64,000 nt of DNA from the NCBI GenBank assembly GCA_024137785.1, contig JAHRHZ010000002.1, positions 15,633,978 to 15,697,977 on the forward strand, in the 5' to 3' direction. This stretch comes from Ginglymostoma cirratum. Taxonomy: Eukaryota. Below, piece after piece: positions 449-32,222 of the stretch; position 1 is the first letter of the stretch; every line of letters starts with the position of its first letter. The translations under genes and the position numbers were made by a program. The notes beneath the pieces were generated by a model. The model made no database searches. It was not told the DNA's origin and worked only from the letters and a program-made list of their open reading frames with translations.

Positions 449-502
449 TTAAGTTAGCCCGACATCAGCAACTGTAGGTTTCAAGAATGGCTGGTTCAGC
501 TC
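449..502 (-). CDS. Gene A exon 10, last coding exon (ELNQPFLKPTVADVGLT*)
   Basis: Strong acceptor ttttttcattccttgtag|, phase 0, TAA at 451-449. Confidence 0.6.
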   Translation of the reverse strand, partial: ELNQPFLKPTVADVGLT

Positions 503-3500
503 CTACAAGGAATGAAAAAATGCGAATTGAGTTGTCTGTGACCAAAAAAAAAGTACTTGAGATAACAAGCTATAGGGCTGGATGAACACGGCAGGCTAAG
601 CAGCATCAGAGGAGCAGGAAAGCTGACGTTTCGGGTCTAGACCCTTCTTCAAAAAATTCATTCCCCGCCCCCCCCCAAAAAATACTCATGGATGTTATTT
701 GCATCTTATTGAAAAATATTCCCTCAATTGAATTATTTCCATTTTTAACACCAACAAGATTTAATGGTTTTTTCAATTTTTTTAAAAGACAGCTATCCTG
801 GTCTGGTATTATTAAGTATGTTTAAAATCCACCATGTAGCATTATAAGGCATTCTGTACAGCAATTTCAATCATTTTCTGGCTTCTTTGGCCCGGCGGCT
901 CAGGGTCGATTCCACCCTCAGGTGACTGTCTGTGTGGAGTTTGCACATTCTCTCTGAGTTTTTTCCCACATCCCAAAGATGTGTAGGCTAGGTGGATTAG
1001 CCATGGGAAATACAGGGCTATAGGAATAGGGTGGGTGGAGGGGTGCTTCTGGGTGGGATGCTCTTTGGAGGGTCGATGTGGACTCAGTAGTCTGAGTGAC
1101 CTACTTCCACACTGTAGGGATTCTAAAGTTCAATTTCATTCCAATAGATTATTTGTGCTGCAATTTCCAAATGATAAATTTCAACTTTCTGGAGTGTGAC
1201 ACTGATATTAATTCAACCTTGTACCGGAGAAGAGGACATTAGGTTTGTTTTACTCTACTACTCAACACAACATAGCACAGGATGAGTGACTCCGTCAATG
1301 TGTGTATCACTAGGACCATACACGTCCACTTGCAGAAAGCCCAGTGGTATGCTTTTTGCTGAGGAGATACTCGAACCTCTAAGACTGAAATCAAACAAAA
1401 TCTTCACTTCTATCTACAGCAACGTGTGAAAACTACAGGAACATTTATTTACATGAAGATTGAAAACAAAGGCTGCATTTCTAACCTGGATGTGATACTT
1501 AATTTTATGATTTTATCAAGTTCTCTTACAGCGTTACTTGTAGCTTGGTTTCCTGTGGCCTGCATCTTCCTGTTCCTGTCTGTTTATGGGGAACACACAA
1601 TGCATTATATTGCAGGAGAAATGACATTGGGCAAAGATTTTCAATAGATAGATGTTTGGAATATCATCTGGAACTTCTTTCCTGCATCAGATTTAACCAT
1701 ACAGCCCAATAAGGATTAATAGCTTGTATAAAAACCACCTTGCCCGTCGTATTATGAACCGACTTATTTTAATGGCTTTGCTGAAGTGGCAGACAAATCA
1801 ATTTCACAGAAACATTGGAACAGCAGTCGCTTGGTAGTACACAATTTGAGCACTGTTGGAAAAAAAGACACATTTCTTCGAAGCTCTTCATCTTTCACTC
1901 AACAGGACCATTTGTAAGAAATGGCAATTCAAAGGAAAATCTGCATTTATACCGCATGAGAGGAGAGTACTGACTGGCTCATGAATGGACTCCAATTTGT
2001 CGAGGCTTACTGTCATTCATCATTGATTGGTACATCCCATGGTAATGCCAAGTTTTGCTCAAACTGTGAACCAGGCTGGATAACTCCGTTTGGTCGCAGC
2101 ATTTCCCTGAGAAACAGATTAGTGGGTGGCTACCACCCATCTTGTCAAGTTTAAACAAGGGCAGTGCATGTCCATATTCTTTCTGGCTGCCAAGAGCAGG
2201 GCCCTGTGTATTAATCTATAGCTAGCCCCATAAATTGGTATTCTTGAGAACTGTCCTGATGGGGGGAAGATGAAAAGCATCAACAAAATGTGACTTTGTA
2301 CTCAAGAAATATCACACTCAAAGATCAGATTCGTTTCTAGTACCTCGGTCAGTCCAAGGTGGTCTGTCTGAACTCATTCCTTGTTAAAACTTTTTAACAG
2401 TTCAATACAACTGAGAGGCTTCCTTGGCCATTTAAGAGTCAACTGCTTGCTGTTTATTTGGAGTCACCTGTAGGCCAGACAACAGATTTCTATCTCTCAA
2501 GAACAGTTATGAATCAGGTGGATTTTTTTTCTAAACAATAATGGTCACCATTTGACTTTTTTTTAATTTCAGGCTATGTTTTTAATTCAAATTCCACAGT
2601 TTGTGGGGGCATTAGAGCCAATGTTAACCTGGGTCTCTGGATTCATAGTCCCAACGAAAATACAAGTACGCCAACAACTCCTTAACACATAAGGAACTCA
2701 AAAGAACCTGTACCGAACCATATAAATCCCTTAGCATACTTGGTGGGGTGAACGTAGACAGGAAATTTCCTCTTGTGGAAGAATATAGAGGTAGGGACCC
2801 CTGTTTAAAAATAAGGGTTTTCCTATTTAAGGCAGAGATGAGGTACCTTTTTTTTTTCTGTGGGGAGCTGTTTGTCTTTGGAATGGTCATCCTCAAAGGT
2901 GCTGAATGCAGAGCATTTGAATGTTTTATTTAAGGCAGAAATAGATGGATTCATGCTAAATGAGGAGTGGGAGTTAATTAGCAGTAGGTGGGCATTTTTT
3001 TTTCATTCACAGAATGGGAGCGTCACTGGCTGGGTAGCATTTATTGCCTATCCCAGAGCGCAGTTCAGAGTCAACCACATTGCTGTGGCTATGGAGTCAC
3101 ATGTAGGCCAAATCAGGTAAGGATGGCAGTTTCCTTCCCTAAAGGGCATTAGTGAGCCAGGTGGGGTTTTCCCTGACAATCAGCAATGGATTTATGATCA
3201 TCATTAACCATATTTATTGAATTCAAATTCCACCAGCTGCAATAACAGGATTCAAACCCAGGTCCCCAGAACATTACCCAGGTCTCTAGATTAACAGTCC
3301 AGCGATAATACCACTAGGCTATTGCCTCCCCTTACACTCAGATCAGTCCTAATCTTATTAAATGGCACAGCAGACTTGATGGGCAGAGTATCCTAATTCT
3401 GCTGTTCTTTCAAATGTTCATATGAACGTTGGCTCCAAATTGTCAATTCTTAGGGACATGTCAACAAACACTGCAGGAAGAGATACTGCAAACAGATGGT

Positions 3501-6500
3501 CTAGCAATCAGAAGAACTCAGCACAGCATTTTTTTTTTTAAGAAACAATTGTTGACAGCTGCAGCCGGTACTTTTTTTCTACGTTTCAAGGGTAGGAGAT
3601 TTAATGAACTTCCAACGCTGACAGTTCAACAGACCTCATCTGTGCTTTAAGAGAGTTTACATCTACTCCATTTCGCTTGTGAATTTCACCCTACAGGTCT
3701 GTGCCTGCACAACAGTCAAAATAGGGTCTGTATGAATGGGACACTCATGGTTCTTATGGAGATTGGTTTTCTGTCCCATGTAAATCACACTCAGACACCC
3801 CTCTGGCAAAAATGGTGTCTGTCAGAACTAGAAAGCTGTTCATCTGTATCAGCTGCAGTAGATTTCAAACAATCGGTAATTTCAGTCACATTACTTACAC
3901 ATGACGTAAAATATAAAGCATATCGGAAGTAAAGGTAACAGCACTTCCCCAGCGAGAATTAAACTTGATTGTCGATCGGCTGATGGCACACATCCTTTAC
4001 CTTTATTAGATATAATCATAGACAGGCATGAACTGCAATTATTAAAAGTACTTAAATTAGCTGAACCCTGATTAGAAGCAAAAACCAAAAGAACTGCGGA
4101 TGCTGTAAATCAGGAACAAAAACAAAATTGGTGGAAAAGCTCAGCAGGTCTGGCAGCATCTGTGGAGGAGAAAACAGAATTCTGAGTTCTGAGGAAAGGT
4201 CACCGGACCTGAAACGTTAACTCTGTTTTCTCCTCCACAGATGCTGCCAGACCTGCTGAGCTTTTCCACCAACTTTGTTTTTGTTCCCTATTAGAAGCAC
4301 TTTGCCATACCACCGCCACTAGGAATCCCTAATTCCCAACATAGTCCATTAGCCCATAAGAATAGGAGGAAGCCGTTCAGACCCAGAGCCTGCTCCGTCA
4401 TTCAAAAAGATCACTTCTGATCCCACATTCTTCACTTAGAAACAGGAAGGACCGCAGATGCAGGAAGCTAGAGTCAATAAGTGTGCTGCTGGAAAAGCAC
4501 AGCAGGTCAGCCAGCATCCAAGGATCAGGAAAGTCAATGTCAGTCCTGACGAAGGGGTTCGGTCTGAAACTTTGACTTTCCTGCTCCTCGGATGTCTCCT
4601 GATGTGCTGTGCTTTACCAGCTCCACATTTCTTAGCCCCACATTCCTCACATTCACTTTCTGGCTTTTTCTCCATTACCTTTCATTCCCATACTGATCAA
4701 GAATCTATCTATCTCAACCTGAAATATAGCCATACTTCTCTGTGGCAACTTTCTGAGAGAAGACAGTCTTCCTCATCTTAGGCTTAAATTGGTGTCCCGT
4801 AGTTCTGATACTAGCCCCTCTGGTCCTAGACTCTGCCATGAGGGGAAACATTTTCCCAGCATTTACCATGTCAAGCCCCTTAAGAATACCATATGTTTCA
4901 ATGAGATCAATTCCTTTAAATTCCAATGAGTAAATTCCCAACCTGTTTAACATTTGCTCATAAGACCATCCCTCTATACTGTGGATTGTTCTTGTGAACT
5001 TTCGACTGCTTGAATTATTCTCTCCAGTCCAGTTAGTAAAATAGGCATCACACTTATTACAATGAAGTGACTGGGCAGAGCGTCCCACCCAGACCCAATC
5101 CCCGACACTCCACCTAATCTACTCATCCCTAGGTACAAGTCCCACCTGCCCCAGTCATGAACAAGTTGACTAGAAAGTACCCGGACACGTAAGAAGAAGC
5201 TTTTTAAGTGTTAGTGGAAGAAGTTAAATAGAACAATTTGCCAATAAGATTTAGATGACGAGGAATGGATTGGAGACTCAACTAGATTGCAGGTTCTGAC
5301 AGTGGGATAGTTAGGCCAAAGTGATCTGTTTCTGCTCTGTAATTTCTGTTCTCACTGTGAAACTATACTCTCAGGGGTTTTTGAAGCATAGAATCTTTTA
5401 CCTGAAAGGATGCCTTTCAAGGGAAATGGCATAAATATTTGATGCAGACTGTGATACAGGGAAATAAGGAGAGAGCGAGAATGGGAATTAGATTTGGACA
5501 GAACTGACAGAATGGGCCAAATGGTCTCCTGCACTGTAAACTTTTCATGTTTGACCACTGTCGAACGAAAAGTTTGGTAAAATGACTGCATTATCAGACA
5601 GTATGTTACTTCTGGACTGAATGTATTGGCTACAGTTTTATCTTTGAACACTCACCAGCTCTTCTCACTGTAGCCACAATCAGCGAGCAAGACAGACAGA
5701 TCACAATGATTCCACCCAGAGGACTCTCAGAAACCATTTGGATCAGACGGTAAGCTGGCAACGAATCAAACAGAATCAAACAGTGCTCACCCATGACACG
5801 CACAGCACACATTCCGATCTGTCTGTCTGCCTTGCCTTGGGAGGTGCAGATATTCAGGGAAAGTACAAGGATGATTTTCCTGTTTGAAATAATGGGATCT
5901 CCTGCATTTAGCGCTAACAGAAAAATCAGACAGAACAAACTGCACCTCCCCATCAGTCTGCCAGGCATCCAATCATTTAAAATCAGCAGACAGATAAACA
6001 AGTGCCCTCAATATGGATGTGTGCACCCCTCTGTTCAGTTCTCTTTTCTCGGGAAACTCACTGTTTCTTTGGCCTCCTGCTGACCTATGCCTCCAATCCT
6101 GGGCTGTGAATACATTGCTACTATATTGAGCACAGGAAACCGTGATAACACCAGGCAGTGAAATTTGACAGCAGCCAGCTAACATCCCCAGACAGAGAAC
6201 CACAGGACGACCGAACTCATAACTCAAAGTAGGAGCAACAAATACCCAATCTGACATTCTAGCACATGGGATGGGCTATGTTCAACGGGAGATATTTAGA
6301 AACACTAAGGCACACATTTGTACACTTTATCTGTTTCTTGGGAATAAAGTCATCACCTTAGATACCAATTTCTGGGTACCTGGTTTTTGCACATAATCCA
6401 CAGCTGGTGGCATGGGCACTCTTCCTGTCGGTCCTTTTTGCATAGAATCCCTACAGCGTGGCAACAGGCCCTTCGGCCCAACAAGTCCACACCGACCCTC

Positions 6501-9500: not shown

Positions 9501-12500
9501 AATTGGCATTTTTCATCGGATTTTATTTGATTTATTATTGTCACATGTACCTAGGTACAGTGAAAAGTTTTGTTTTGCGCGCAGTACAGATAGATCATAC
9601 CATGCAAAGTGCATCAGGGTAATAGAACAGAGAGAGGAATACAATGTTACGGCTGCAGAGAAGGTGAACAAACAGCAAGATCAACATTAAATTTAAAATT
9701 TGAGTGGTCCATTTGGAAGTCTTAATATCAGTGGGGAAGAAGCTGTTCTTGTGTGTTTACGCTTTTGCACCTTCTGCCCAACAGAAGAAGTTGCAACTGG
9801 ATTGGGAGGCGCAGTTTGAGAATATCTGATGATTCAGTTCCAGAGCAGTCTGTCACTTGGGGTAAATCTTGAATGAACTCTAATTAGGAGCAAAGAAACA
9901 GGACAGTATACTGTACCTTCGGTGGAGATCCAGCAACTAAATGAACCACTAAGGAGAAGAAACTGCAAGATTTGGAGTAGATTTTGAAGAAGCCGAAGAC
10001 CTGGAATTATTAGCAAATTCTAATCAACATTTCTTGAGCAAGGAATGTTCCCACAGTGAAATTAATATTCTATACAAAGAGCCACAAATTGAAATTTGTA
10101 AGAGTCACATTTAGATGATTCATAGCCTCTATTATTACATCGCAACATTTTTGTAAACATTCAATACTTTTGCTTACGTTCTGTTTTGACCTTAAGGAGG
10201 GATGCGATTATTTCACAAATCAATGCTGTTACTGCAGCAGCCAATGCGATGATGGATAATATCCTTGCACAGTCATGTAGCAGTCGAGCACCTGAAACAA
10301 AAAATTTATTTTCAGCTCATGCTACTTTGAAAACAATTTGCAAATTTCAAACAAGGTCTGCTATGCCTTAAAATTGTGCTTCTTTTGGATCTTGCATGTT
10401 ACAAATAGAACACCTCCCACCAAGCTTATTCTGTTTCAATGCGATGGACACACATTTAGAAATAGTGCTGAGGTCTTTCCATTCTATCTCAACGACATAC
10501 TTTGATTCAGTAATCTAGGACCGCATCAATTTCCTATATTGGGCAACCTGCCGCGTTCTGGAGGAGAATCTGAACTTAAACTGTGATCTTCTCCATTAAT
10601 GTTCTCAGTAGATGCCAAAGGTTTGCATCATGAGATTGCAGGCTTGATCTTTTTGTTTTGCCCCAGGTCATGAATGGGGAGCCTGGACATTTCCCAGCCC
10701 CACAAACCCGACCCGACCTGTTTAAAAGTGCCCCCAATGGTTGGATTTTCGTACTAAGATGTAGGTGAAAGCGGGAGCCGTCCCAGACAACGTGACAAAG
10801 AACTCAGAGGCTTCTGGGTGTGGAGGTGTAATGGCTGAAAGTCTGGCCCTGGTGCTCCAGTGCATTGTTTTTGAAGATGCGAAGATAAAAGATAAATGAA
10901 AGCTGACTTCATCCCCCACTCCCCATCACCATACCCCCACATTGCCAGTGTCCCACCCATGCCAACCAATGCCAGTTTGTGCCCTCAATCTACCCTCCAT
11001 GGCTCTTTATAACCCCTATGCCAAACAGTCATGCCAGTCCATGTCCATTCCTTATCCTCTTGGCTTAAATCTACCATAAAACCTCAATAAGTATCCAAGT
11101 AAATAAGTAAATACTATGGACATCCAGTCCCTACACACCTGTATTCCCCATGCTGATGGCCTAAAGGCCCTCCACTTCTTCCTTCCCGCAGAACTGACCA
11201 ATCCCCCTCCACCGACACCATCCGCTTAGCCAAACTCGTCCCCACCCTCAACAACTTCTCTTTCAATTCCTCCCACTTCCTACAGACAAAGGGGGTGGCC
11301 ATGGGTACCCGCATGGGCCCAAGCTATGCCTGCCTCTTTGTAGGTTACGTGGAACAATCCCTCTTCTGTACCTACACTGGCCCTAAACCCCACCTCTTCC
11401 TCCGTTACATTGATGATTGCATCGGCGCCGCCTCGTGCTCCCACGAGGAGCTCGAACAGTTCATCCACTTCACCAACACCTTCCACCCCAACCTGAAGTT
11501 CACCTGGACCATCTCCAACACTTCTCTCTCCTTCCTGGACCTCTCTGTCTCCATCTCTGGTAACCACCTAGAAACCGATGTCCATTTCAAGCCCACTGAC
11601 TCCCACAGCTACCTGGAATACACCTCCTCCCACCCACGTTCCTGCAAAAATGCCATCCCCTATTCCCAATTCCTTGGCCTCCGCCGCATCTGCTCCGAGG
11701 ATGAGACATTCCACTCCCGTACATCTCAAATGTCCTCATTCTTCAAGGACCGCAACTTCCCCCACACAGTGGTCGAGAACGCCCTCGACCGTGTCTCCCG
11801 TATTTCCCAGAACACATCCCTCATGCCCCGTCCCCACAATAATAACCAAAAAAGAATACCCCTCGTCCTCACGTACCAGCCCACCAACCTCTGGATCCAA
11901 TGCATCATCCTCCGACACTTCCGCCATCTGCAATCAGACCCCACCACCAAAGACATTTTTCCCTCCCCACCCTTATCTGCCTTCTGGAGGGACCACTCCC
12001 TCCGCGACTCCCTTGTCCGCTCCACACTCCCCTCCAGCCCCACCACACCCGGCACTTTTCCCTGCAACCGCAGGAAGTGCTACACCTGCCCCCACACCTC
12101 CTCTCTCACCCCAATCCCAGGCCCCAAGAAGACTTTCCACATCAGGCAGAGGTTCACCTGCACATCTGCCAATGTGGTATACTGCATCCGCTGTACCCGT
12201 TGTGGCTTCCTCTACATCGGCGAAACCAAGCGGAGGCTTGGGGACCGCTTTGCAGAACACCTGCGCTCAGTTCGCAACAAACAACTGCACCTCCCAGTNN
12301 NNNNNNNNNNNNNNNNNNNNNNNNNNNNNNNNNNNNNNNNNNNNNNNNNNNNNNNNNNNNNNNNNNNNNNNNNNNNNNNNNNNNNNNNNNNNNNNNNNTC
12401 CACATCAGGCAGATGTTCACCTGCACATCTGCCAATGTGGTATACTGCATCCGCTGTACCCGTTGTGGCTTCCTCTACATCGGCGAAACCAAGCGGAGGC

Positions 12501-15500
12501 TTGGGGACCGCTTTGCAGAACACCTGCGCTCAGTTCGCAACAAACAACTGCACCTCCCAGTCGCGAACCATTTCAACTCCCCCTCCCATTCCTCAGATGA
12601 CATGTCCATCCTGGGCCTCCTGCAATGCCACAGTGATGCCACCAGAAGGCTGTAGGAACAGCAAATCATATTCAGCCTGGGAACCCTGCAGCCCAATGGC
12701 ATCAATGTGGATTTCACAAGCTTCAAAATCTCCCCTCCCCCAACCGCATCCCAAAACCAGCCCAGTTCATCTCCACCTCCCTAACCTGTTTTTCCTCTCA
12801 CCTATCCCCTCCTCCCACCTCAAGCCACACCCCCATCTCCTATCTACTAACATCATCCTGCCCCCTTGACCTGTCCGTCCTCCCTGGACTGACCTATCTC
12901 CTCCCTACCCCCCCCACCTACACTCACCTTTACTGGCTCCATCCCCGCCTCTTCGACTTGTCTGCCACCTCTCCACCTATCCTCTCCTCTATCCATCCTC
13001 TATCCGCCTCCCCCTCTCTCCCTATTTATTTCAGAACCCTCTTCCCCTCCCCCATTTCTGATGAAGGGTCTAGGCCCGAAACGTCAAGTTTTCCTGCTCT
13101 TCTGATGCTGCTTGACCAGATTAGCAACTAGTTTCAGTTTGACAGTTCTTTTGATGGGTCTCTTACCTTGCACCCTGTTAAATATCTCATCCGTTCTTTT
13201 GGCAAATCCACTGAGTTCATGTACTTGTTACACATTTTCGTGTCTGCTATAACAATCCAAAAGAGCTCTTGACTTTTCATAAAGTGCGCTTTATCTTTTC
13301 AAAAATAAACCTTGACCTTCTCCCAAGAACAATATCCAAAAAGCTCAACACTTCTATAAAAGGAGATTCTACTACTCTGAAGAACTTCAGACCTTCTCCA
13401 ATCAGACCTAAAGTGCAGAAGTTGTGTGTTGGACATCCCACTAGCCTGAGACAGCTATGCTTTTTCACATGAAACTGCCTTTGTGAACTGCAAAGGTACA
13501 AATTTGAACTCAGCTCCCTGGGAAAATAATGGGGCCATGTTTGGGAATGGAGTTTAGCCTCTGCTGGTAATTTTGTAACAGTACAGGGAAAGACTCCCTG
13601 TCTATGTGTGAAAATTCAGGTATCCGTCTACAAACCTCCATCCTACTAATTTTTCCTGGCGTGAAAATATATCGTCCTTCTACTTTTACATCTTTAGTAT
13701 CACAGAGACATACAGCACGGAAACAGACCATTCTGAAACATACCAACTGTAATCCCAAACCAAACTCGTCCCACCTGCCTGCTCCTGGCCCATATCCCTC
13801 CAAATATTTCTTATTCATGTACTTCTCTAGATGTCTTTTAAATGTTGTAACTGTACACACTTCCTCTGGAAGTTCATTCCACACATGAACTACTGTCTGT
13901 GTAAAAAAAACTGTCCCAATGACTTTTTTAATCTTTCTCCTCTCACCTTAAAAATATGCCCTCTAGTCTTGAAATCCCCTGCCCACAGGTAAAGATGTCT
14001 TTTCTATACCCCTCATGATTTCATAACCTCTATAAGGTCATCACTCAACCTCCTACGCTGGAGTGAAAGTAATCCCAGCCTATCCAGCCTCTCCTTATAA
14101 CTCAAACTGTCCATTCCCAGCGACATTCTGGTAATCTCTTCTGAACCCTCACCAGCTTGAGAAATATCTTTCCTATGACGGGGCAACAAGACCTGGACAC
14201 AGTACTCCAGAAGAGGCCTCACCAACGTCCTGTACAATTGCATTACGACATCCCAACTCCTATACTCAAAGGTCTCTTTGTTGAGGCTGAGTGCAGGCCC
14301 AATAGTGGAATATCATTTTTAACTAAGAAACGGAACCGATTACCAGACATGACTCACCGTGTAAAATAAGGCGATACGCATCGCTCCTCTTGCTGAACAG
14401 ATTTTCCACGGTGCAGGTGTAGGTGCCGCAGTCTGTTTTTGTGGCTTTAACAATGATCAACTTGCTGTTGTTTTGTACCAACTGATAATGTTGGCCATTC
14501 TCTATCAAGTCAGGACCTTTCCTCCACAGAATGGAACTCGCTTTTCCTCCAGCCACGTGACAGGTCAGTTCAACAGTGGAATCCACATAGGTAGCTTTGA
14601 CCAAAGGTTCTGCCAATAGTTCTGTGCCAGTGAATAATTATTCAGGTAAATAGGTCTGAGCCTGAGGTATTATGGGCCAGACCAGACGCCTCAAAACATT
14701 TTAAGAAGGTAGCCTAGACCCTAGCCTTTTCTTATTTATAAAGGCAAATGTGAAGTGCCTGTTCCAGATGCCAAACTACTCGATGTTAAGCAAAACACAA
14801 CTTATTTAAACACTAAGGTTAAAATACAACCAAGGAAAGGGAATTTAGAGCAACTTAACACTATTGGAAAACTTATCAGAAAAATAGAGACGGTAACAAT
14901 TATTAATTAGCTGTTCCAATATAGTAACATCTCGTAAACACATCCCTTGGCAAAAAGGAAAAGTCAGACACAGATTATCACATGCAGTCCTCCAACCCAG
15001 GAGGAAACAAAAAAAAAGTCAAGAGAAAATTCAGAGAGCGGCAGCCAGGAGATATTCACCGAAGCTTCCAACTCTGTTGAGATCCCAGTGGCTTCTACTT
15101 AAAGGAAAACCCAGAAATTCTGATTTGTAAGAGCTGACCACACCCATTCAGGCTGTTAAAAAAACCCAAGGCCTCCCAAGCTGTTTACTCAAATGGTCCT
15201 GGTAGACTATTCAGCGCCTCTGTCTTACAAATAAGAAAATTTTCATGTAAACACTTGACAAATTCCACTCCATCTATGCCCTTAATACACTGGCAGTCCC
15301 AGCCAATGTTTTAATTAAGAGATAATAGGTACTACAGCTGCTGGAGATAACAAGGTGTGGAGCTGGATGAACACAGCAGGCCAAGCAGCATCATAGGAGC
15401 AGGAAAGCTTGACGTTTTGGGTCTAGACCCTTCTTCAGAAAAAAAAATTGTTGTGGGGCTGGAGTCAAGTGTAGGGCAGACCAGGTAAAAATGACACTTT

Positions 15501-18500: not shown

Positions 18501-21500
18501 ACTGTAAGGATTCTATGAAAGCAGTGGGCACTGTGCTTTATGCAGAACATGTTGGTGGGCAGCTGTGAGGTCCAACCCTGGATCCTTGCATCACTGCCCT
18601 CAGGCAAGACAGGATGTCCTCCCCACTGCAGTTCCACCATTCTCTTCTGTCAGCCTGATGCCAGATCACAAACACTGGCTGTCACTGCTCCTGAGCCCGG
18701 GCAGAACCCATCGGCTCAATTTGGGAATAATCCCAATTGAATCTCCGGTGGAGACAAACTGTTGCTGCAACAGACATGTGTAGACCTTCACTGGAACCTT
18801 TCACTGTGCAATAGAACCAGAGATTCTGTCTGAACTCCTCCAACTCGTTTTAGAAGGATGAGGGAGGGATCCAACTGAAACTTTCAAACTACCGAAAGGC
18901 CTGGACAAAGTGAATGTTGGAAAGATGCTTCCATCAGTAGGAGAGTCTAGGACCCAAGGACGCAACCTTAGAGTAAAGGGAAGATCTTTTGGAACGGAGA
19001 TAAGGAGAAACTTCTTCAGCCAGAGACTGGTGAATCTATGGAATTCACTGCCACACAAGGCTGTGGAGGCCAGGTCATTGAGTATACTTAAGACTGAGTT
19101 AGACAAGTTCTTGATTATCAAGGGGATCAAGGGTTACAGGGAGAAAGCAGGAGAATGAGGTTGAGGAACTTATCAGCCATGACTGAATGGCGGAGCAGAC
19201 TCGATGGGCCGAATGGCCTAATTTCTGCTCCTATGTCTTATGGTCTTAACTCCTCACAGCCTCTTCTATTATGCTCATTGGTATCATTGTTCAGATTTAT
19301 TAAATCAAGGTCTGCAGTATGATCTAAAAATAGTAAATGTGACATTCATTCTCAATCCTGTTCCTATCTACTTCTACCCCTCCCTCCTTCACACCTCTGT
19401 TAAAAACTTCTATCGGTCTGATTTTTTCTTTACTCATTGAGAGGATGAGGGCGTCACTGGCTAAGTAGTATTTGTTGTTCATCCCTAATTGCCCAGAAGG
19501 CAGTTAAGAGTCAACCACATTGCTGTGGATCTGGAGTCACATGTAGGCCAGACCAGGTAAGGATTGAAGTTTCCTTCCCTAAAGGACATTTACAACCTGT
19601 TCACCACAACAATAAATAGGATGTTGCCAGGTATCAAAGGTATGAGTTATATAGAAAGGTGGATATGTTGGGACTTTTTTCACTGGAGCACAGGAGGTTG
19701 AGAGGTGACCTTTTGAAAGTTTATAAAATAGTGAGGGGTATAGATATGGTTCATGAGATAACAAGGAGTAGAGCTGGATGAACACAGCAGGCCAAGCAGC
19801 ATCGGAGGAGCGAAGGGGCGAAGAGCTCCTCCGATGCTGCTTGGCCTGCTGTGTTCATCCAGCTCTACACCTTGTTATCTCAGATTCTCCAGCATCTGCA
19901 GTTCATACTATCTCTAGATATGGTTCATGGTAGGTGTCTTTTCCCCAGAGTGGGGCATTTCAAGATTAGGGTCACATTTTTAAGTCGAGACAAAAGAAAT
20001 TTTTAAAAAATACGTGGGGGCAAATTTTTTACACAAAGGGTTGTTTGCGTGTGGAATGAACTTCCTGCGGAAATGGCAGATGTAGGCACAATTACAATGT
20101 TTAAAAGACATTTGCATAAGTACATGAGTAGGAAATGGATATGGGCCAGGAGCAGGCAGGTGGGACTAGTTTTGTTTGGGTACATGGTCAGCATGGACTG
20201 GTTGGAACGAAGGGTCAGTTTTTGTGCTGTATGACGCTATTACTTCATACCATACTCCACACTTCACTCAGAGAGTTGTGAACCTGTGGAATTCTCTACC
20301 ATAGAATGCTGTTAGGGCTAATTCATTAGATATATTCAAGAGGGGGCTGGGTCTGCCCTTTGTGGCTAAAGAGATCAAGGCGTATGGAGAGATAGTGGGA
20401 ATGGGATACTGAAATTTCATGATCAGCGTGATCTTATTGAATGGTGGTGCAGGCTCGAAGGGCTGAATGGCCTACTCTTGCACCTGTTTTCCATGTTTCT
20501 GTGGTTTGCACTTTCAGTAGAGGGACAGAGAGAGAGAAAACTGGTTGATCATTGGTGGTTTAATCTGAGGGTCACCTCACCACGGAGAGGGATGAGGTCA
20601 AGAACATGGGACCTTCATAATGAACTCACACTGTTGGCATCACTCTGCATTACATACCTAAATTGGTTAGCTCAGTTGGCTGGGCAGCTGCTTTGGGTGC
20701 AGAGTGATGCCCATGGGCATGGGTTCAGTTCCTATATTTAGCTAAGGTCACCAAAAAGATCCCACTTTCTCAACCTTGCTCCTTCTCTGAGAAGTGGTGA
20801 CCCTCAGGTAAAACTCATCTCTCTGTCTCAATGAGACAGCAGCCTCCAGGACTATGGTGACTAGTAGAGCAACAAATCACAAGTCGCAATTCCCAAGGAA
20901 TTCCTCAACGACGGAATGACAGATACAGCATGACAACAGAAGCTGACAGTCAATTTCTGTCATTTCTTTCTTCGATCCTGATCAGTAGCTTTTATTTAAT
21001 CTTGAATGAAGACAAGCAGTATACGTTTGCTTGATGGAACAATCCAGAACAAGATGGAATAATCTTACAAGCTACAGCTGGACCATTTTACACGCAAATC
21101 ATTTAAGTATTCCCCCCTCCCGATCCCACCATAGGAAGAATCGTGGAATTGACTGTTGGAACGTCATGCTGGGGTCAGTTGAAATTTCCCAGACAAAATC
21201 GATAGGTTTCCTGCTGGGTCATGGAGCTGGCAGAAAGGCACGAAGCAGATCAATGGAAGCCAGGTACAGATCAACCATGGAAGGGTAGAATAGGTTCAAG
21301 GAGCTGAATGGCTTATTCCTGTCCCAATTCAATGACAGAGTCCTTAAAACTGTATCACGATTTGAAATGCATGTCATTTTCAAAGTGATAAAGTATTGAA
21401 ATCACTTACCTATGAGTTTCAGATTCATGCTCCTCTCCCAGTTACCATTCACCGTGATGGTATAAATTCCTTGGTCACCGAGTTTTAGACTGTCTACCAT

Positions 21501-24500
21501 CATTGATCCATTGGATGCATTAAAACGTAAACGGGATTTGAAGTGTTTATTTGGTCTCTGGATTGGGGAATTTGGTACGTAATCCAAAATAGTGACAAGT
21601 TTTCCATTGCTGTTATTGAACGTCCATTCAATCTGACTGTCGCTGAGATTCGTTCCGTGATCAGGATCCAGTAAAACTGATGAACCAATGGCAGCCACAA
21701 CATTGTCCCCTCCAAGTGATTGACATGAAAAACAGAAACAAAAGTAATCCATTAACATGTGAAAATGAAGCATTGAGCAATTGTGAAGTGAAATTGTAAC
21801 ATTATGCCAGCAGGTGTCTGGAGACTCCAAAACAAATAGCCCTTTGTATGGTGTGCTTTACCAAGGCATTCAAAAGCCTTCACAGCGAGTGATGTAATCT
21901 TTGAAATGCAGGCACAATTGCAATTCGTCCACAGCGAATCTCCAGATAAAGCAGCATCAGAAGAGCAGGAAGGCTGACATTTTGGGCCTAGACCATTCTT
22001 CAGAAATGGGGAGGGAAAGGGGGTTCTGAAATAAATAGGGAGAGAGGGGGAAGCGGATAGAAGATGGATAGAGGAGAAGATAGGTGGAGAGGAGACAGAC
22101 AGGTCAAAGAGGCGGGGATGGAGCCAGTAAAGGTGAGTGTAGCTGGGGAGGTAGGGAGGAGATAGGTCAGTCCAGGCCTCCTCTACATCGGGGAAACCAA
22201 GTGGAGGCTTGGGGACCGCTTTGCAGAACACCTACACTTGGTTCGCACTAAACAACTGCACCTCCCAGTCGTGAACCATTTCAACTCCTCCTCCCACTCC
22301 TCAGCTGACATGTCCATCCTGGGCCTCCTGCAGTGCCACAACGATGCCACCCGAAGGTTGCAGGAACAGCACCTCATATTCCGCTTGGGACCCTGCAGCC
22401 CAATGGTATCAATGTGGATTTCACAAGCTTCAAAATCTCCCTTCCCCTACCGCAACCCAAAACCAGCCCAGCTCGTCCCCGCCTCCCTAACCTGTCCTTC
22501 CTCCCACCTATACCCTCCTCCCAACTCAAGTCCCACCCCCATCTCCTACCTACTAACCTCATCCCGCCCCCTTGACCTGTCCGCCCTCCCTGGACTAACC
22601 TATCTCCTCCCTAACTCCCCAACTATACTCACCGTTACTGGCTCCATCCCCGCCTCTTTGACCTGTCTGTCTCCTCTCCACCTATCTTCTCCTCTATCCA
22701 TCTTCTATCCTCCTCCCCCTCTCTCCCTATTTATTTCAGAACCCTCTTCCACTCCCCCATTTCTGAAGAAGGGGCTAGGCCTTCCTGTTCCTCTGATGCT
22801 GTTTGGCCTGCTGTGTTCATGCAGCTCTACACCTTGTCATCTCAGATTCTCCAGCATCTGCAGTTCCTACTATCTCTGAATCTCCAGATAATCTGTTTGT
22901 GTGATGAATAATTGGGATAAATACCATTGTAACATCAGAGGCCACTCCCATCCTCTTCAGAATGGTACCATGGGACCTTCACATCCACTTGAGAGCACCT
23001 GGGACATTTTCTGAGCATCTCATCTGAAAGGCATCACCTCTGACAGGTCAGCCCTGCCTCAGGCAGACAGGAGCAAAGTGAGAGATAATAGGTACTGCAG
23101 ATGCTGGAGAATCCGAGATAACAAGGTGTGGAGCTGGATGAACACAGCAGGCCAAGCAGCATCATAGGAGCAGGAAAGCTTGACGTTTCGGGCCTAGACC
23201 GTTNNNNNNNNNNNNNNNNNNNNNNNNNNNNNNNNNNNNNNNNNNNNNNNNNNNNNNNNNNNNNNNNNNNNNNNNNNNNNNNNNNNNNNNNNNNNNNNNN
23301 NNNNNNNNNNNNNNNNNNNNNNNNNNNNNNNNNNNNNNNNNNNNNNNNNNNNNNNNNNNNNNNNNNNNNNNNNNNNNNNNNNNNNNNNNNNNNNNNNNNN
23401 NNNNNNNNNNNNNNNNNNNNNNNNNNNNNNNNNNNNNNNNNNNNNNNNNNNNNNNNNNNNNNNNNNNNNNNNNNNNNNNNNNNNNNNNNNNNNNNNNNNN
23501 NNNNNNNNNNNNNNNNNNNNNNNNNNNNNNNNNNNNNNNNNNNNNNNNNNNNNNNNNNNNNNNNNNNNNNNNNNNNNNNNNNNNNNNNNNNNNNNNNNNN
23601 NNNCATAGGAGCAGGAAAGCTTGACGTTTCGGGCCTAGACCGTTCATCAGAAAATGATTTTCTGATGAAGGGCCTAGGCCCGAAACGTCAAGCTTTCCTG
23701 CTTCTATGATGCTGCTTGGCCTGCTGTGTTCATCCAGTTCCACATCTTGTTATGCAGGAGCAAAGTGAAGTTGGTGGTAAGGAATGGCTGAGGGAAGGAA
23801 GGGCTGGGGGGTGGGGTTTGGAGGTGGTGGGGGAGGACAGGAGAGAAGAAGAGAAATATCCCAGAGGCCTAGTCAGGACAGAAAGAGAAAGAGTCAACAG
23901 CAAAGCCGAGGGGGTGTGTGTAAAGAGCCCAGAGGAAGGTGGATATCACAAAAAAATACCCAGAATGAAGACACTAGCGAAGAAGAGACCAAACCCAAAA
24001 GGATGGAAAAGTAACCCACAGAGAAAAGGCCCAGTGGGAGGTGAGGAAGAGAAAATTGGCAGAGGCAAGCAGGGATTGAGAATGAACCCAAAGGGAATGG
24101 TTGGGGAAAGAGCCAAAAGGACAGGTTGGGGGGAATGGTGGATGCCCAAGAAAGGAGGGAAGGGATTAGGAGAATGAAAGGGAGGAAGAAGAATGGGGAA
24201 TGGAAAATGGGAAGTGGGAGGGAGGAATGCAAATGTGTGGGCAGCACGTGGGAATTTGTGGAGAGCACTGAAATCCCAGGCAACCACAATGTGATCATTG
24301 TCCACAACCTGACTCATTTCAGTTCAAAGACATTGGGCAGGAATCCAAGCTACAAACCTTGTCAGGCATCAGACAGAGGGAGAGTTACTTTGATTCTTGG
24401 CTTCAGGAAGCACTCACAGCCCCACTGTTCAGAAGGTCTTTAGAAGTGTATATATAATGCTGTGGTTAGGGATTTACTCTAAATGGGGATAGACAGTTTG

Positions 24501-27500: not shown

Positions 27501-28988
27501 TCATTCCATACACGCACTACCCTCTACATGGAAAGGTCCCTTTAAATCTTAACCCTCTCACCTTAAACCTGTGCCCTCTCATTTTGGACTCCCTTACCCT
27601 GGGGAAAAGACCTTGTCTATTCATCCCCTTCATGATTTCAAAAACCTCTATAAGGTCACCTCCCAGCCTCCGATGCTCCAGGGAAAATAGCACCAACCTA
27701 TTCAGCCTCTTCCTGTAGCTCAAAGCCTCCAACCCTGGCAACGTCCTTGTAAATCTTTTCTGAACATATTCAATTTTCACAACTTCCGCCCCATAGCATT
27801 TAGAATAGAATTGCATGCAATATTCCATACGTGGCCTAACCAATGTCCTGTACAGCTGCAACATGACACTCACAACTCCTATACTCAATGCAGTGACCAA
27901 TAAAGGCAAGCGTATCAAATGCCTTCTGCACTGACCTGCCTAACTGTGACTTTCAAGGAACTATGAACTTACACTGCAAGGTCTCCTTGTTCAGCATCGC
28001 TCCCCAGAACCTTACAGTTAAGGTAGATGAAGTGGTTATGATGCCACTTGTGTTACTTGCCCTTACTAACCAAGGCAGAGACGGTTAGAGCTAGGAGGTT
28101 ATGCTGAAACTACATAAGGTGTTGGTTAGGCCACAGATAGAGTATTGTATGCAGTTGTGGGATCCACATTACAGGAGAGAGTGCAGTGTGATTGCACTGG
28201 AGAGGGTGCAGAGGACATTTATCAGGATGTTGATTGGACTGGAGAGTTTTAGTTATGAAGAGAGTTTGGACAAGACTGGAATTGATTTCATTGGAGCAGA
28301 GAAGACTGAGTGGGGGCATATTTGAAATTTAATGCAATGGGCAGGATGTTTAGAGAGGGACAATTATCTTCAGCCCCAGTGTGTTGGGAATCTGGAACTC
28401 ACCTGAATCTATAAGAGTGGTGGAAGCAGAAAGCATTATAATGTTTAAGAAATATTACCATGTGCACTTGCGCATTTAAATTTAGATTTCAATGTGCCAA
28501 CGGATACAAGGCTATGGGCCCAGTGCTGGAAAGTGGGGCTGAAAAAGTTAGCCAGCTGCTTTTGGCTGGAATGGAGTTGATGGGCTGAAAGGCCCTTTTT
28601 TTCTGCGCTGCAGACCTATAGGAATCATCAGGATAGTAAAAGGTTGAATTCCAGTTGTCATAGAATCCCTAACGGTGTGGAAGAAGGCCATTCGTCCCGT
28701 TCAGTTCACACTGACCCTTCAAAGAGCATGTCACCCTTCCCCTGTCCCCTGCCTTTCCCATGCACGCTAAGAGACAATTTCCCACGGCCAATGCACCCTA
28801 ACCTGCACAGCTTGGGTCTGTAGGAAGGAAACTGGAGCACCGTGAGGTAACACAGACACGGGGAGACAGTGCTGACCCCACACATACACAGTTTACACCA
28901 ACCTCCCGGCCCCAGCCAGATCCTCACCTCCTGCAGCGATCCCCCGGAGGAGACCGAGCAGCAACACCAGAAGGGATCGGGGATCCAT
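449..28988 (-). CDS. Gene A (whole span, 10 coding exons): Ig V + Ig C2 + 5-transmembrane protein, about 417 aa; CD2/SLAM/HEPACAM-like ectodomain with a CD47-like multi-pass C-terminus
   Basis: Exons 28988-28928, 21709-21410, 14621-14358, 10291-10178, 10000-9917, 8256-8131, 5754-5656, 4000-3899, 1579-1530 and 502-449 join through GT-AG introns with compatible phases into a 1254-nt ORF with no internal stop. Confidence 0.8.
558..655 (-). mobile_element. Short Penelope terminal-repeat derivative
   Basis: Matches the reverse complement of the 17175-17270 terminus. Confidence 0.75.
895..1125 (+). mobile_element. HE1/V-SINE-like SINE, 5' partial
   Basis: gactgtctgtgtggagtttgcacattctc V-domain core and ctgtagggattcta tail. 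Confidence 0.75.
1530..1579 (-). CDS. Gene A exon 9, basic juxtamembrane cytoplasmic segment (YRNRKMQATGNQATSNA)
   Basis: cag| acceptor, |gtaaga donor, phase 1-0; positively charged residues directly after TM5. Confidence 0.6.
2998..3331 (-). mobile_element. tRNA-derived SINE, family 2
   Basis: A/B-box head (tagcctagtgg, ggtttgaatcc) and gcaataaatgct...gaatgaa tail; other copies near 2425-2680 and 19425-19590. Confidence 0.78.
3899..4000 (-). CDS. Gene A exon 8, loop + TM5 (GKGCVPSADRQSSLILAGEVLLPLLPICFIFYVM)
   Basis: aag| acceptor (in-frame alternative 6 nt downstream), |gtaagt donor, phase 1-1. Confidence 0.72.
4081..4289. mobile_element. Hairpin-forming short Penelope-derived element (second terminal family)
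   Basis: About 70-bp inverted arms around ctgaggaa..ctgaaacgtt; TSD attagaagca at 4071-4080 and 4290-4299. Confidence 0.75.
4350..5075 (-). mobile_element. CR1/HER1-like LINE 3' fragment containing a hairpin insertion (about 4437-4636)
   Basis: ORF 4714-5088: YEQMLNRLGIYSLE..DLIETY.ILKG..SRTRG, typical of the CR1 ORF2 C-terminus. Confidence 0.75.
5656..5754 (-). CDS. Gene A exon 7, TM4 (PYRLIQMVSESPLGGIIVICLSCSLIVATVRRA)
   Basis: ttcgttgccag| acceptor, G|gtgagt donor, phase 1-1. Confidence 0.75.
6441..6750 (-). mobile_element. HE1/V-SINE-like SINE
   Basis: tRNA-like head, V-domain core and LINE-derived tail on the minus strand. Confidence 0.85.
8131..8256 (-). CDS. Gene A exon 6, TM3 (GPTETTVIILMLLVLLLAGVVPSTWSVKVCDTKMLSKTWIVK)
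   Basis: ttttcttccctaaatag| acceptor, |gtaagt donor, phase 1-1, strongly hydrophobic. Confidence 0.82.
9917..10000 (-). CDS. Gene A exon 5, TM2 (RLRLLQNLLQILQFLLLSGSFSCWISTE)
   Basis: ttccag| acceptor, G|gtacag donor, phase 1-1, amphipathic to hydrophobic helix, 177-nt upstream intron. Confidence 0.7.
10178..10291 (-). CDS. Gene A exon 4, TM1 (GARLLHDCARILSIIALAAAVTALICEIIASLLKVKTE)
   Basis: ttttgtttcag| acceptor, |gtaagc donor, phase 1-1, hydrophobic stretch. Confidence 0.85.
12299..12398. other. Assembly gap (100 N) with duplicated flanks; other gaps at 23204-23603, 46118-46517 and 58394-58580
   Basis: N runs; about 12136-12298 is repeated almost exactly after the gap. Confidence 0.95.
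13058..13085 (+). ncRNA. Minimal hammerhead-ribozyme motif in the Penelope terminal repeat
   Basis: CUGAUGA-A-GGGUC(UAG)GCCC-GAAAC-GUC: conserved core boxes with stem II. Confidence 0.65.
13700..14275 (-). mobile_element. CR1/HER1-like LINE 3' fragment
   Basis: LYRTLVRPLLEYCVQ..ERLDRLGL.SL.RRRL..DLIEV; WNELPEEV. Confidence 0.85.
14358..14621 (-). CDS. Gene A exon 3, Ig C2/I-set domain
   Basis: ELLAEP...VELTC...ILWRK...NSKLII...DCGTYTCTVEN; cag| acceptor, G|gtgagt donor, phase 1-1, 264 nt. Confidence 0.9.
15320..17270. mobile_element. Rearranged Penelope-like insertion (inverted RT fragment + sense GIY-YIG/terminal part) with a 16-bp TSD
   Basis: TSD caatgttttaattaag at 15304-15319 and 17271-17286; minus-strand RT fragment about 15514-16135; plus-strand 3' part 16136-17270. 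Confidence 0.9.
17599..17945 (+). mobile_element. tRNA-derived SINE, family 2
   Basis: Homologous to 2998-3331 and 53335-53692. Confidence 0.75.
18203..18518 (+). mobile_element. HE1/V-SINE-like SINE
   Basis: ggtggctcagtggttagc A-box, ggtttgattcc B-box, V-domain core. Confidence 0.85.
18850..19245 (+). mobile_element. CR1-like LINE 3' end
   Basis: SRTQG..LRV.G..F.TEIRRNFFSQR.VNLWNSLP. Confidence 0.85.
19620..20500 (+). mobile_element. CR1/HER1-like LINE 3' fragments
   Basis: CR1 C-terminal motifs; interrupted by the 19756-19914 hairpin. Confidence 0.75.
19756..19914. mobile_element. Hairpin-forming short Penelope-derived element inserted into a CR1 fragment
   Basis: Near-perfect inverted arms of about 55 bp; 15-bp TSD tagatatggttcatg at 19741-19755 and 19915-19929. 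Confidence 0.85.
21410..21709 (-). CDS. Gene A exon 2, Ig V-set domain without the canonical cysteines (CD2/SLAM/CEACAM N-domain type)
   Basis: V-AAIGSSVLLDP...IEW-F...RL-F...NGS...L-LGDQGIY-ITV; donor G|gtaagt at 21410. The 5' boundary is uncertain (21709 via a GAG acceptor, or 21724 where the acceptor reads CAT). Confidence 0.85.
21950..22877 (+). mobile_element. Penelope-like 3' fragment with an inverted 5' terminal piece and a 14-bp TSD
   Basis: TSD gaatctccagataa at 21936-21949 and 22878-22891; GIY-YIG tail homologous to 12470-13116. Confidence 0.88.
23082..23754. mobile_element. Hairpin Penelope-derived element spanning an assembly gap
   Basis: Inverted terminal sequences; TSD caggagcaaagtga on both sides. 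Confidence 0.75.
23623..23689. ncRNA. Back-to-back pair of minimal hammerhead motifs, one on each strand
   Basis: Minus strand 23650-23623 and plus strand 23662-23689 both read CUGAUGA..stem..GAAACGUC. Confidence 0.6.
25908..26250 (-). mobile_element. tRNA-derived SINE, family 2
   Basis: Homologous to 2998-3331. Confidence 0.78.
26420..26940 (-). mobile_element. CR1-like LINE 3' fragment
   Basis: VQFWSPHYRKDVEALERVQ..RRRMRGDLIEV; FFTQRVV.VWN.LP. Confidence 0.85.
27305..28020 (-). mobile_element. CR1/HER1-like LINE 3' fragment
   Basis: LYRTLVRP.MEYC.QF..RRLGGDLIEV. Confidence 0.85.
28021..28620 (+). mobile_element. CR1-like LINE 3' fragment
   Basis: LVRPQIEYC.QLW.PHY..LERVQR. Confidence 0.75.
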
Positions 28989-32087: not shown

Positions 32088-32222
32088 TCAGGTCCGCCAT
32101 ATCTGAATCCGAGCATGTTCAGTAATCTCGTCGGTAGCGTACGTCTTCTTTCCTGTAGCTCCCGTAGACTCATACAACTTCATCTCACTGAATGTCACAA
32201 CAGGGTTGCTCGATAATGAATT
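32088..32222 (-). CDS. Gene B exon 5, last coding exon (NSLSSNPVVTFSEMKLYESTGATGKKTYATDEITEHARIQIWRT*)
   Basis: Strong polypyrimidine acceptor ...ttttggcttcag|, phase 0, CpG-containing patch in AT-rich DNA, ITIM/ITSM-shaped motifs. Confidence 0.68.
   Translation of the reverse strand, partial: NSLSSNPVVTFSEMKLYESTGATGKKTYATDEITEHARIQIWRT

Follow-up and report, generated by a model that had tools for sequence, protein, structure and literature searches.

The question raised by this locus is whether the small hydrophobic exons that lie on its minus strand, downstream of two immunoglobulin (Ig) exons, belong with them to a single gene and, if so, what kind of membrane protein this gene encodes. 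The window, i.e. the whole stretch of DNA that was analysed, covers 64 kb of the nurse shark Ginglymostoma cirratum. The original prediction had assembled these exons into a "hidden" gene for a protein of about 417 amino acids, ordered as signal peptide, V domain, C2 domain, five membrane helices and short tail.

Gene structure

The gene, hereafter the 2-Ig/5-TM gene, is read on the minus strand from 28988 to 449 and consists of ten exons with canonical AG/GT borders (Table 1). It shares the window with a neighbouring gene (gene B), and these two are its only genes. Counted exon by exon, the lengths total 1254 nt, which corresponds to 417 codons and a TAA stop. All ten exons are open, the eighteen splice dinucleotides are undamaged, a sense codon is formed at each exon junction, the phases fit and there is no frameshift. 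The exons encode, in this order, the signal peptide, the V domain, which has no cysteine, the C2 domain, five hydrophobic segments and a tail of 33 residues. Each of the five hydrophobic exons lies between an AG acceptor and a GT donor, is divisible by 3 in length, open and of phase 1-1, and encodes one helix; their predicted positions, borders, phase and open frame thus all hold. The data demonstrate this gene structure.

Table 1. Exons of the 2-Ig/5-TM gene and assembly gaps in the window (identities are to the Stegostoma tigrinum model P0188 except where another model is named).
Feature	Positions	Strand	Details
Exon 1: ATG and 20-residue signal peptide	28928..28988	-	donor GTGAGG, phase 1 end; 95% identity to the P0188 start
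Exon 2: V domain, 300 nt, zero cysteines, CD2/SLAM/CEACAM type	21410..21709	-	donor GTAAGT; 81% identity
Exon 3: C2/I-set, spare cysteine in D-C-G-x-Y-x-C turn	14358..14621	-	87% identity
Exon 4: juxtamembrane cysteine and TM helix 1	10178..10291	-	phase 1-1, donor GTAAGC; 86% identity
Exon 5: TM helix 2, L-Q-x-L-Q-F ... C-W-I motif	9917..10000	-	phase 1-1, donor GTACAG; 81% identity (78% to P0005)
Exon 6: TM helix 3 and basic cytoplasmic loop	8131..8256	-	phase 1-1, donor GTAAGT; 95% identity
Exon 7: TM helix 4	5656..5754	-	phase 1-1, donor GTGAGT; 88% identity
Exon 8: extracellular loop with conserved cysteine (G-K-G-C) and TM helix 5	3899..4000	-	phase 1-1, donor GTAAGT; 91% identity
Exon 9: basic start, cytoplasmic tail	1530..1579	-	enters phase 1, exits phase 0 at GCT/GTAAGA
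Exon 10: tail end, family motif E-L-x-x-P-F-L-K	449..502	-	stop TAA at 451-449
Assembly gap, non-coding	12299..12398	.	intron 3 (C2-to-TM1), within retroelement copy
Assembly gap, non-coding	23204..23603	.	intron 1 (signal-to-V), between repeat copies

The C2 exon matches the Pfam families I-set (8e-14) and Ig_3 (1e-13). A second possible acceptor, in frame, occurs in this exon at 14609. The junction between exons 9 and 10 is the same in P0188 (T-S-N-T/E-L-N-E-P-F-L-K). The two assembly gaps seem to hide no coding exon, since the orthologues are colinear over both the C2-to-TM1 and the signal-to-V junctions with zero added residues.

Short hydrophobic open frames are frequent in AT-rich DNA, and the five exons might accordingly be chance open frames in T-rich introns that the original prediction had picked out. 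Both strands of the whole window were scanned blindly for open phase 1-1 exons that measure 75-150 nt, end at a GTRAG donor and reach a Kyte-Doolittle mean of 1.8 or more over 19 residues. Five places were returned, namely TM1, TM3, TM4, TM5 and the single membrane exon of gene B; the plus strand of the 64 kb window gave zero qualifying exons. TM2 by itself fails this strict filter. However, apart from the genuine membrane exon of gene B, the scan of both strands yields no further exon of this kind, and all five hydrophobic exons align with orthologues at 81-95% identity. The scan and the orthologue identity together refute the chance reading, to which we attach a vanishingly small probability.

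Orthologues and the elasmobranch family

Exons were searched singly, and the orthologues P0188 and P0194 were used as stand-ins for the whole protein. P0188, a RefSeq model of 419 aa from the zebra shark Stegostoma tigrinum, is collinear with every exon at 81-95% identity; the predicted layout is therefore matched both exon by exon and by a complete model. Identity is higher in the membrane exons (about 89%) than in the V exon (81%). The partial model P0194 from Rhincodon reaches an identity of 86% in C2 and 91% in TM4, and P0005 from Hemiscyllium is collinear with 50-78% identity across the membrane exons. These relatives in RefSeq are computational gene models, of which some isoforms skip one TM exon in frame.

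A hidden Markov model (HMM) of the membrane domain matches 62 of the fetched proteins. The original prediction had supposed an uncharacterised chondrichthyan family; this stands for sharks and rays, in which members occur in at least 14 species and form several old lineages of paralogues, but no chimaera member was seen among the family relatives found. The order of exons 5-8 is maintained in sharks and rays, and orthologue groups in the tree track the species tree. The gene is a member of one conserved orthologue group in an elasmobranch multigene family. Conservation of the TM exons, which had been proposed as a test of the gene, is thus demonstrated at the level of both the Stegostoma orthologue and the family.

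The relatives are named in databases as "uncharacterized", HEPACAM-like, CD48-like, CD276 homolog or hemicentin-like. The gene is hidden from the open reading frame track only, since its relatives have already been modelled by gene predictors, although under no meaningful name. A literature search found no paper on this shark and ray receptor family. A protein search with the membrane part of P0188 gave no usable match, a homologue search with just the membrane region of P0018, to which its word filter is poorly suited, recovered the query alone, and Pfam on individual TM exons gave nothing meaningful. Pfam matches to MARVEL and Cation_efflux were obtained with single members, far under the cut-off, and were taken as chance.

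Fold, topology and a possible tether

At least three membrane helices had been set as a further test of the original prediction. Five long helices are present in the AF2 models of P0018 (pLDDT 70) and P0194 (pLDDT 78, pTM 0.64), and the hydropathy profile of P0188 has five peaks, which demonstrates the five-helix domain. The net charge of the loops is +1.2 and +2.75 for the inner ones and -1.2 and +0.25 for the outer ones; these charges fit, and demonstrate by the usual topology rule, an N-terminus outside and a C-terminus inside.

The helix 4-5 loop, on the outer side, carries a cysteine that is nearly invariant across the family. It is present together with the spare cysteine of the C2 domain in 43 of the 62 members. 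Scyliorhinus has lost both at once, with Y and W in their place, and so, independently, has one paralogue of Cetorhinus, with S and R; in Chiloscyllium P0184 the loop cysteine is retained but that of C2 is missing. This joint retention and the two joint losses suggest a tether of the CD47 style. A disulfide between the spare C2 cysteine, located in the membrane-facing turn, and the loop cysteine is thus tentatively predicted, from covariation alone, with a probability that we place somewhat below even.

RNA reads and expression

Reads were placed on positions 4296-10295 from one polyA RNA-seq run (24% read) and three contig runs; the TM5 and tail exons fall outside this region. Over TM1-TM3 the four runs gave zero depth and zero splice joints within 4296-10295, only repeats being covered. 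Near TM4 the polyA RNA run contributes about one or two reads, whose first mate lies on the plus strand and which extend into the intron. The gene is therefore nearly silent in the four runs, only one of which is recorded as RNA, with its source tissue unstated.

This almost nil RNA depth over the exons would be expected if the copy in this genome were silent or decaying and made no protein, its relatives being genuine; the weak polypyrimidine tract at the TM2 acceptor and the weaker TM2 donor, GTACAG, point the same way. Against this, the exons are open with undamaged splice dinucleotides and no frameshift, the identity of 81-95% to the orthologues of Stegostoma and Rhincodon is greatest in the membrane exons, and a single RNA run of unstated tissue was sampled. 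We consider a silent copy very improbable.

A main product of another form was also considered, namely a single-pass receptor made of signal peptide, both Ig domains, TM1 and a short tail, with exons 5-8 as minor or alternative exons. Read-through at the TM1 donor reaches a stop after five codons (R-K-Q-K-Y-stop), so that intron retention would yield such a form; moreover, the TM exons, all of phase 1-1, can be skipped in frame, as in RefSeq isoforms of other sharks. Yet conservation within the gene is highest in exons 5-8 (81-95%), which keep their order in sharks and rays, and the loop cysteine of exon 8 covaries with that of C2, which is sensible only if the two occur in the same protein. 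A predominant single-pass product is accordingly judged very improbable. We conclude that the 2-Ig/5-TM gene is, in all likelihood, an intact ten-exon gene for a 417-residue membrane glycoprotein of the elasmobranch family.

Comparison with known Ig receptors

The original prediction had assigned the outer domain to the CD2/SLAM type. Indeed, the V exon has no cysteine, the nearest Ig structures in the fold search are those of CD48, CD58 and 2B4, and the ectodomain lies nearest to CD48, CD58, 2B4, SLAM and CEACAM. The shark protein shares with the CD2/SLAM group a cysteine-free V and a disulfide-bonded C2 domain. It differs in that CD2, CD48, CD58, 2B4, SLAM and NTB-A are single-pass or GPI-anchored, whereas it has five spans, and in that SLAM receptors carry T-x-Y-x-x-V/I switch motifs. 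No such motif is found in the shark tail exons (1579-1530 and 502-449), whose sole tyrosine comes from the junction codon, at the edge of the membrane.

With the CEACAM/HEPACAM group the likeness, a V plus C2 ectodomain, concerns the Ig domains only. Compared with solved structures, the family profile has CEA and CEACAM1 as its top V-plus-C2 matches (1e07, 2.8e-40; 9gh5, 2.4e-27); only Ig matches were obtained, none for the membrane part. CEACAM and HEPACAM have one span or a GPI anchor in place of five helices, and the cytoplasmic tail of HEPACAM is long. The mouse Skint proteins also combine an IgV and IgC ectodomain with several membrane helices; they have three helices and Ig domains of the butyrophilin/B7 type. 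The five helices of the shark protein set its layout apart, and in the fold search CD2-family domains (CD48, CD58, 2B4) outrank those of the B7/butyrophilin type.

The layout of the shark family otherwise recalls CD47 alone, in which each helix likewise has roughly its own exon. In both, an Ig domain sits directly atop five membrane helices with short loops, N-out and C-in. CD47 is regarded as an atypical multi-pass member of the Ig superfamily (PMC10902115), in which a Cys33-Cys263 bond joins the Ig domain to the outer helix 4-5 loop (PMC10902115) and the cytoplasmic tail is short (4-34 aa; PMC7206415, PMC10902115), as is the 33-aa C-terminal tail of the shark protein. The shark protein likewise has a cysteine in the outer helix 4-5 loop, putatively bonded to an Ig domain. 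Unlike CD47, with its single IgV and single gene, the shark proteins have two Ig domains and form a multigene family in sharks and rays, and their outer V lacks the canonical disulfide and resembles CD2/SLAM/CEACAM. No CD47 membrane-region family appeared in hmmscan (8 members at E<=1 and 28 at E<=10); V-set_CD47 Pfam matches were sub-threshold only and located on the C2 domain. Five fold searches with two models listed no CD47 chain, the lists being filled by Ig matches. We regard as rather unlikely a common ancestry with CD47 of the five-helix module and its putative Ig-to-loop disulfide, in which case an expanded CD47 lineage with two Ig domains would persist in sharks and rays.

Proposed mode of action and significance

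The working of the protein is a proposal that we infer throughout, with each step slightly less probable than its contrary. The V domain might bind a partner on another cell, as V domains of CD2, SLAM and CEACAM do. The disulfide between the C2 turn and the outer loop could fix the ectodomain onto the helix bundle, in the manner of Cys33-Cys263 in CD47. Because the tail is devoid of tyrosine motifs, the protein might then serve as a displayed ligand or act through sideways contacts of its helix bundle; SLAM-type receptor signalling would not be expected of a 2-Ig/5-TM protein.

An entire elasmobranch receptor family is currently filed under misleading database names. It joins a building plan like that of CD47 to a different, CD2/SLAM-like ectodomain of two domains, and it exists as several old elasmobranch paralogues. 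Should the common ancestry be true, the ancestor or the sister of CD47 would be a CD2/SLAM-like V-C2 receptor to which a multi-pass anchor had been added, and cartilaginous fish would display a whole family of "self-marker" ligands. Were the membrane module related to that of CD47, the family would bear on the origin of the marker-of-self system; were it unrelated, the design of an Ig on five helices with a tethering disulfide would have arisen twice, which would hint at why it is useful.

Gene structure and its orthologues

As originally noticed, the ORF list of the minus strand contains only two long Ig-like frames (21402-21830 and 14323-14616). The five hydrophobic exons proposed between these frames and the tail are present at their predicted places, and the ten exons of the gene were found by direct reading of the minus strand (Table). 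All internal exon borders show AG...GT, each of exons 2-8 is in phase 1-1 and exon 9 exits in phase 0 at GCT/GTAAGA. Counting gives a summed exon length of 1254 nt, enough for 417 codons plus the terminal TAA; none of the eight codons split across junctions is a stop.

Table. Exons of the ten-exon gene and features of the neighbouring gene B, with identity to the Stegostoma tigrinum protein P0188
Feature	Coordinates	Strand	Identity to P0188
Exon 1, ATG and 20-residue signal peptide	28988-28928	minus	95%
Exon 2, V domain	21709-21410	minus	81%
Exon 3, C2 domain	14621-14358	minus	87%
Exon 4, TM1	10291-10178	minus	86%
Exon 5, TM2	10000-9917	minus	81%
Exon 6, TM3	8256-8131	minus	95%
Exon 7, TM4	5754-5656	minus	88%
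Exon 8, TM5	4000-3899	minus	91%
Exon 9, tail	1579-1530	minus	
Exon 10, tail and stop	502-449	minus	
Gene B	32100-50298	minus	
Gene B, V exon	50298-49936	minus	
Gene B, membrane exon	41238-41137	minus	

The exons were searched singly, with database orthologues used as stand-ins for the whole 417-codon product. The V exon, compared by phmmer with 1.84 billion representatives, gave 334 matches, many of them proteins of 390-430 aa with an N-terminal V domain and their parts in the same order; these relatives are shark RefSeq predictions named "uncharacterized protein" or "HEPACAM-like". Further proteins, all elasmobranch, came from a profile search (28 members) and from a search that used the closest relative as query; their names include "CD48 antigen-like", "CD276 antigen homolog" and "hemicentin-1-like". 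No protein marked as belonging to the window itself came up in these searches. The nearest relative is the Stegostoma protein P0188 (LOC125446599 isoform X2, 419 aa), which the window exons match in order, with an identical tail junction and with five of the eight junction codons encoding its residue at that point. P0194, a partial Rhincodon model, reaches 86% identity in C2 and 91% in TM4, and the Hemiscyllium (P0005) and Chiloscyllium (P0184) proteins show 50-81% identity in the membrane exons. These matches place the window in a third, related species of carpet-shark type. The gene and its proposed architecture (signal peptide, V, C2, five TM, tail; about 417 aa) are thus confirmed through conservation rather than through transcripts of the species. 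The five membrane exons have a length-weighted mean identity to P0188 of about 89%, above that of the V exon, which fits a constrained anchor and a faster-changing binding domain. At the TM1-to-TM2 junction (TM2 acceptor, 10000), the Stegostoma model has two more residues (F-P-G-L-H vs R-L-R here), while Rhincodon has the length of the window; this suggests a small between-species shift of splice site in the short inner loop.

Gene B, located upstream in the same orientation, is a single-pass Ig gene with one V domain (Pfam V-set, 2e-9; CEACAM-like matches are weak). In Chiloscyllium, an old model (P0190) joins the counterpart of gene B to that of the ten-exon gene, so the gene order is conserved.

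Chance occurrence and assembly gaps

A scan of both strands over the whole 64 kb looked for open exons in phase 1-1 that are 75-150 nt long, end at a GTRAG donor and reach a mean hydropathy of at least 1.8 over 19 residues. Only five places qualify, namely TM1, TM3, TM4, TM5 and the membrane exon of gene B, and no exon passes on the plus strand of the window. TM2 falls outside this filter because of its GTACAG donor and lower hydrophobicity, yet it is conserved in the orthologues.

Two assembly gaps lie in introns. One (12299-12398) is in the C2-to-TM1 intron, within a retroelement with reverse-transcriptase-like frames on the gap flanks; the other (23204-23603) separates short copies of repeats in the signal-to-V intron. 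Both junctions are crossed by the Stegostoma and Rhincodon orthologues without an extra residue, so neither gap appears to conceal a coding exon, although continuity across them is not provable. Introns 2 and 3 are filled by several copies of one retroelement (11295-12869 and 16175-17224 on the plus strand, 15332-16045 on the minus strand) that carry reverse-transcriptase-like frames plus a C-x-x-C stretch resembling a zinc finger; the first of these gaps interrupts one copy.

RNA reads

Four runs were mapped to 4296-10295: one polyA RNA run (raw reads, about a quarter of the run), the sole run recorded as RNA, and three contig runs. All four cover very deeply the high-copy repeats 4496-4895, 6296-6895 and 9496-9695, where depth is thousands-fold over the flanks with many variant letters. 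Depth is zero on TM1, TM2 and TM3, and no read joint in this interval matches a predicted intron. About one to two reads lie at 5496-5895 (first mate on the plus strand), but they are uninformative on splicing because their spread extends into the intron. The gene is nearly silent in the RNA sample examined. Reading through the TM1 donor (10178-10163, minus strand) gives R-K-Q-K-Y and then a stop; the corresponding codons of Hemiscyllium and Chiloscyllium (R-K-Q-K-Q) belong to the exon. A transcript retaining the intron after TM1 would encode a single-pass protein that ends in a very short tail.

An elasmobranch family

Of the fetched proteins, 62 match a hidden Markov model built on the membrane region; they represent at least 14 species in eight or more orders, among them the rays Hypanus and Pristis. 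In a quick maximum-likelihood tree (one protein per locus; the two longest-branch ray rows are uncertain), several paralogue groups each follow the species tree, and the window gene groups with Orectolobiformes and one gene each of Carcharodon, Mustelus and Scyliorhinus (SH-aLRT 99). It adds a member to an elasmobranch family, so far unnamed, of membrane proteins with two Ig domains and five passes; literature searches turned up no description of such a family. The proposal of an uncharacterised chondrichthyan family of multi-pass Ig proteins therefore holds for sharks and rays; no chimaera member, and no bony-vertebrate member, was seen in searches of limited reach.

The family shows several variants. 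RefSeq isoforms of P0185, P0179, P0015, P0025, P0026, P0005 and P0192 lose in frame one TM exon, half of TM3 or the C2 exon; in these computer-predicted forms, loss of one helix would flip the remainder of the protein in the membrane. One paralogue group (P0020, P0147, P0006, P0178 and P0182) has about 40 extra residues between helices 2 and 3, holding a sixth hydrophobic segment, and a D-S-D-C-G-S loop motif replacing G-K-G-C-E-P. In Hypanus sabinus, P0102 and P0044 carry a single V domain straight onto five helices, the domain count of CD47; the loop cysteine is kept, with a V-domain or juxtamembrane cysteine in each as a possible partner.

Fold, topology and relation to CD47

Pfam recognizes Ig domains only (V-set in exon 2, I-set/Ig_3 in exon 3). 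In AlphaFold2 models built from family alignments, the family protein P0018 has two beta-sandwiches and five long helices (mean pLDDT 70, pTM 0.43), and P0194 (C2 plus anchor) has helices at 96-126, 131-159, 163-188, 200-234 and 246-278 (mean pLDDT 78, pTM 0.64). Over 40 members, the net charges of the loops predicted inside are +1.2 and +2.75 (basic) and of those predicted outside -1.2 and +0.25 (acidic or neutral), which fits a predicted topology with the N-terminus out and the C-terminus in.

Family members have an extra C2 cysteine in a D-C-G-x-Y-x-C turn at the membrane-facing end of the domain; a further cysteine, in the outer loop joining helix 4 to helix 5 (G-K-G-C-E-P-A-A), is nearly invariant. 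The window gene carries both, as do 43 of the 62 members overall. The Scyliorhinus orthologues have lost the two together (Y and W stand in their place), and an independent joint loss is seen in one paralogue of Cetorhinus (S and R); the Mustelus sister of that paralogue retains both. One Chiloscyllium protein keeps the loop cysteine alone. This covariation suggests a putative disulfide tying C2 to the helix bundle. The Cys33-Cys263 bond of CD47 is of the same Ig-to-loop kind and is required for CD47 signalling (PMC10902115, PMC7206415).

The original prediction of a CD47 analogue stands as regards architecture: an Ig domain on five helices, a short tail and a candidate Ig-to-loop disulfide. 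The likeness is one of architecture; the outer domain of the shark gene is another kind of V domain and its protein has two Ig domains whereas CD47 has one. Of the family members compared with Pfam (28 of them at E<=10), none matches a CD47 membrane family, and CD47 is absent from all five fold-search lists, a weak test as Ig matches fill them; membership of the CD47 family is not supported. In the likeliest reading, the product is a cell-surface recognition molecule whose ectodomain would be fixed to its five-helix bundle much as in CD47.
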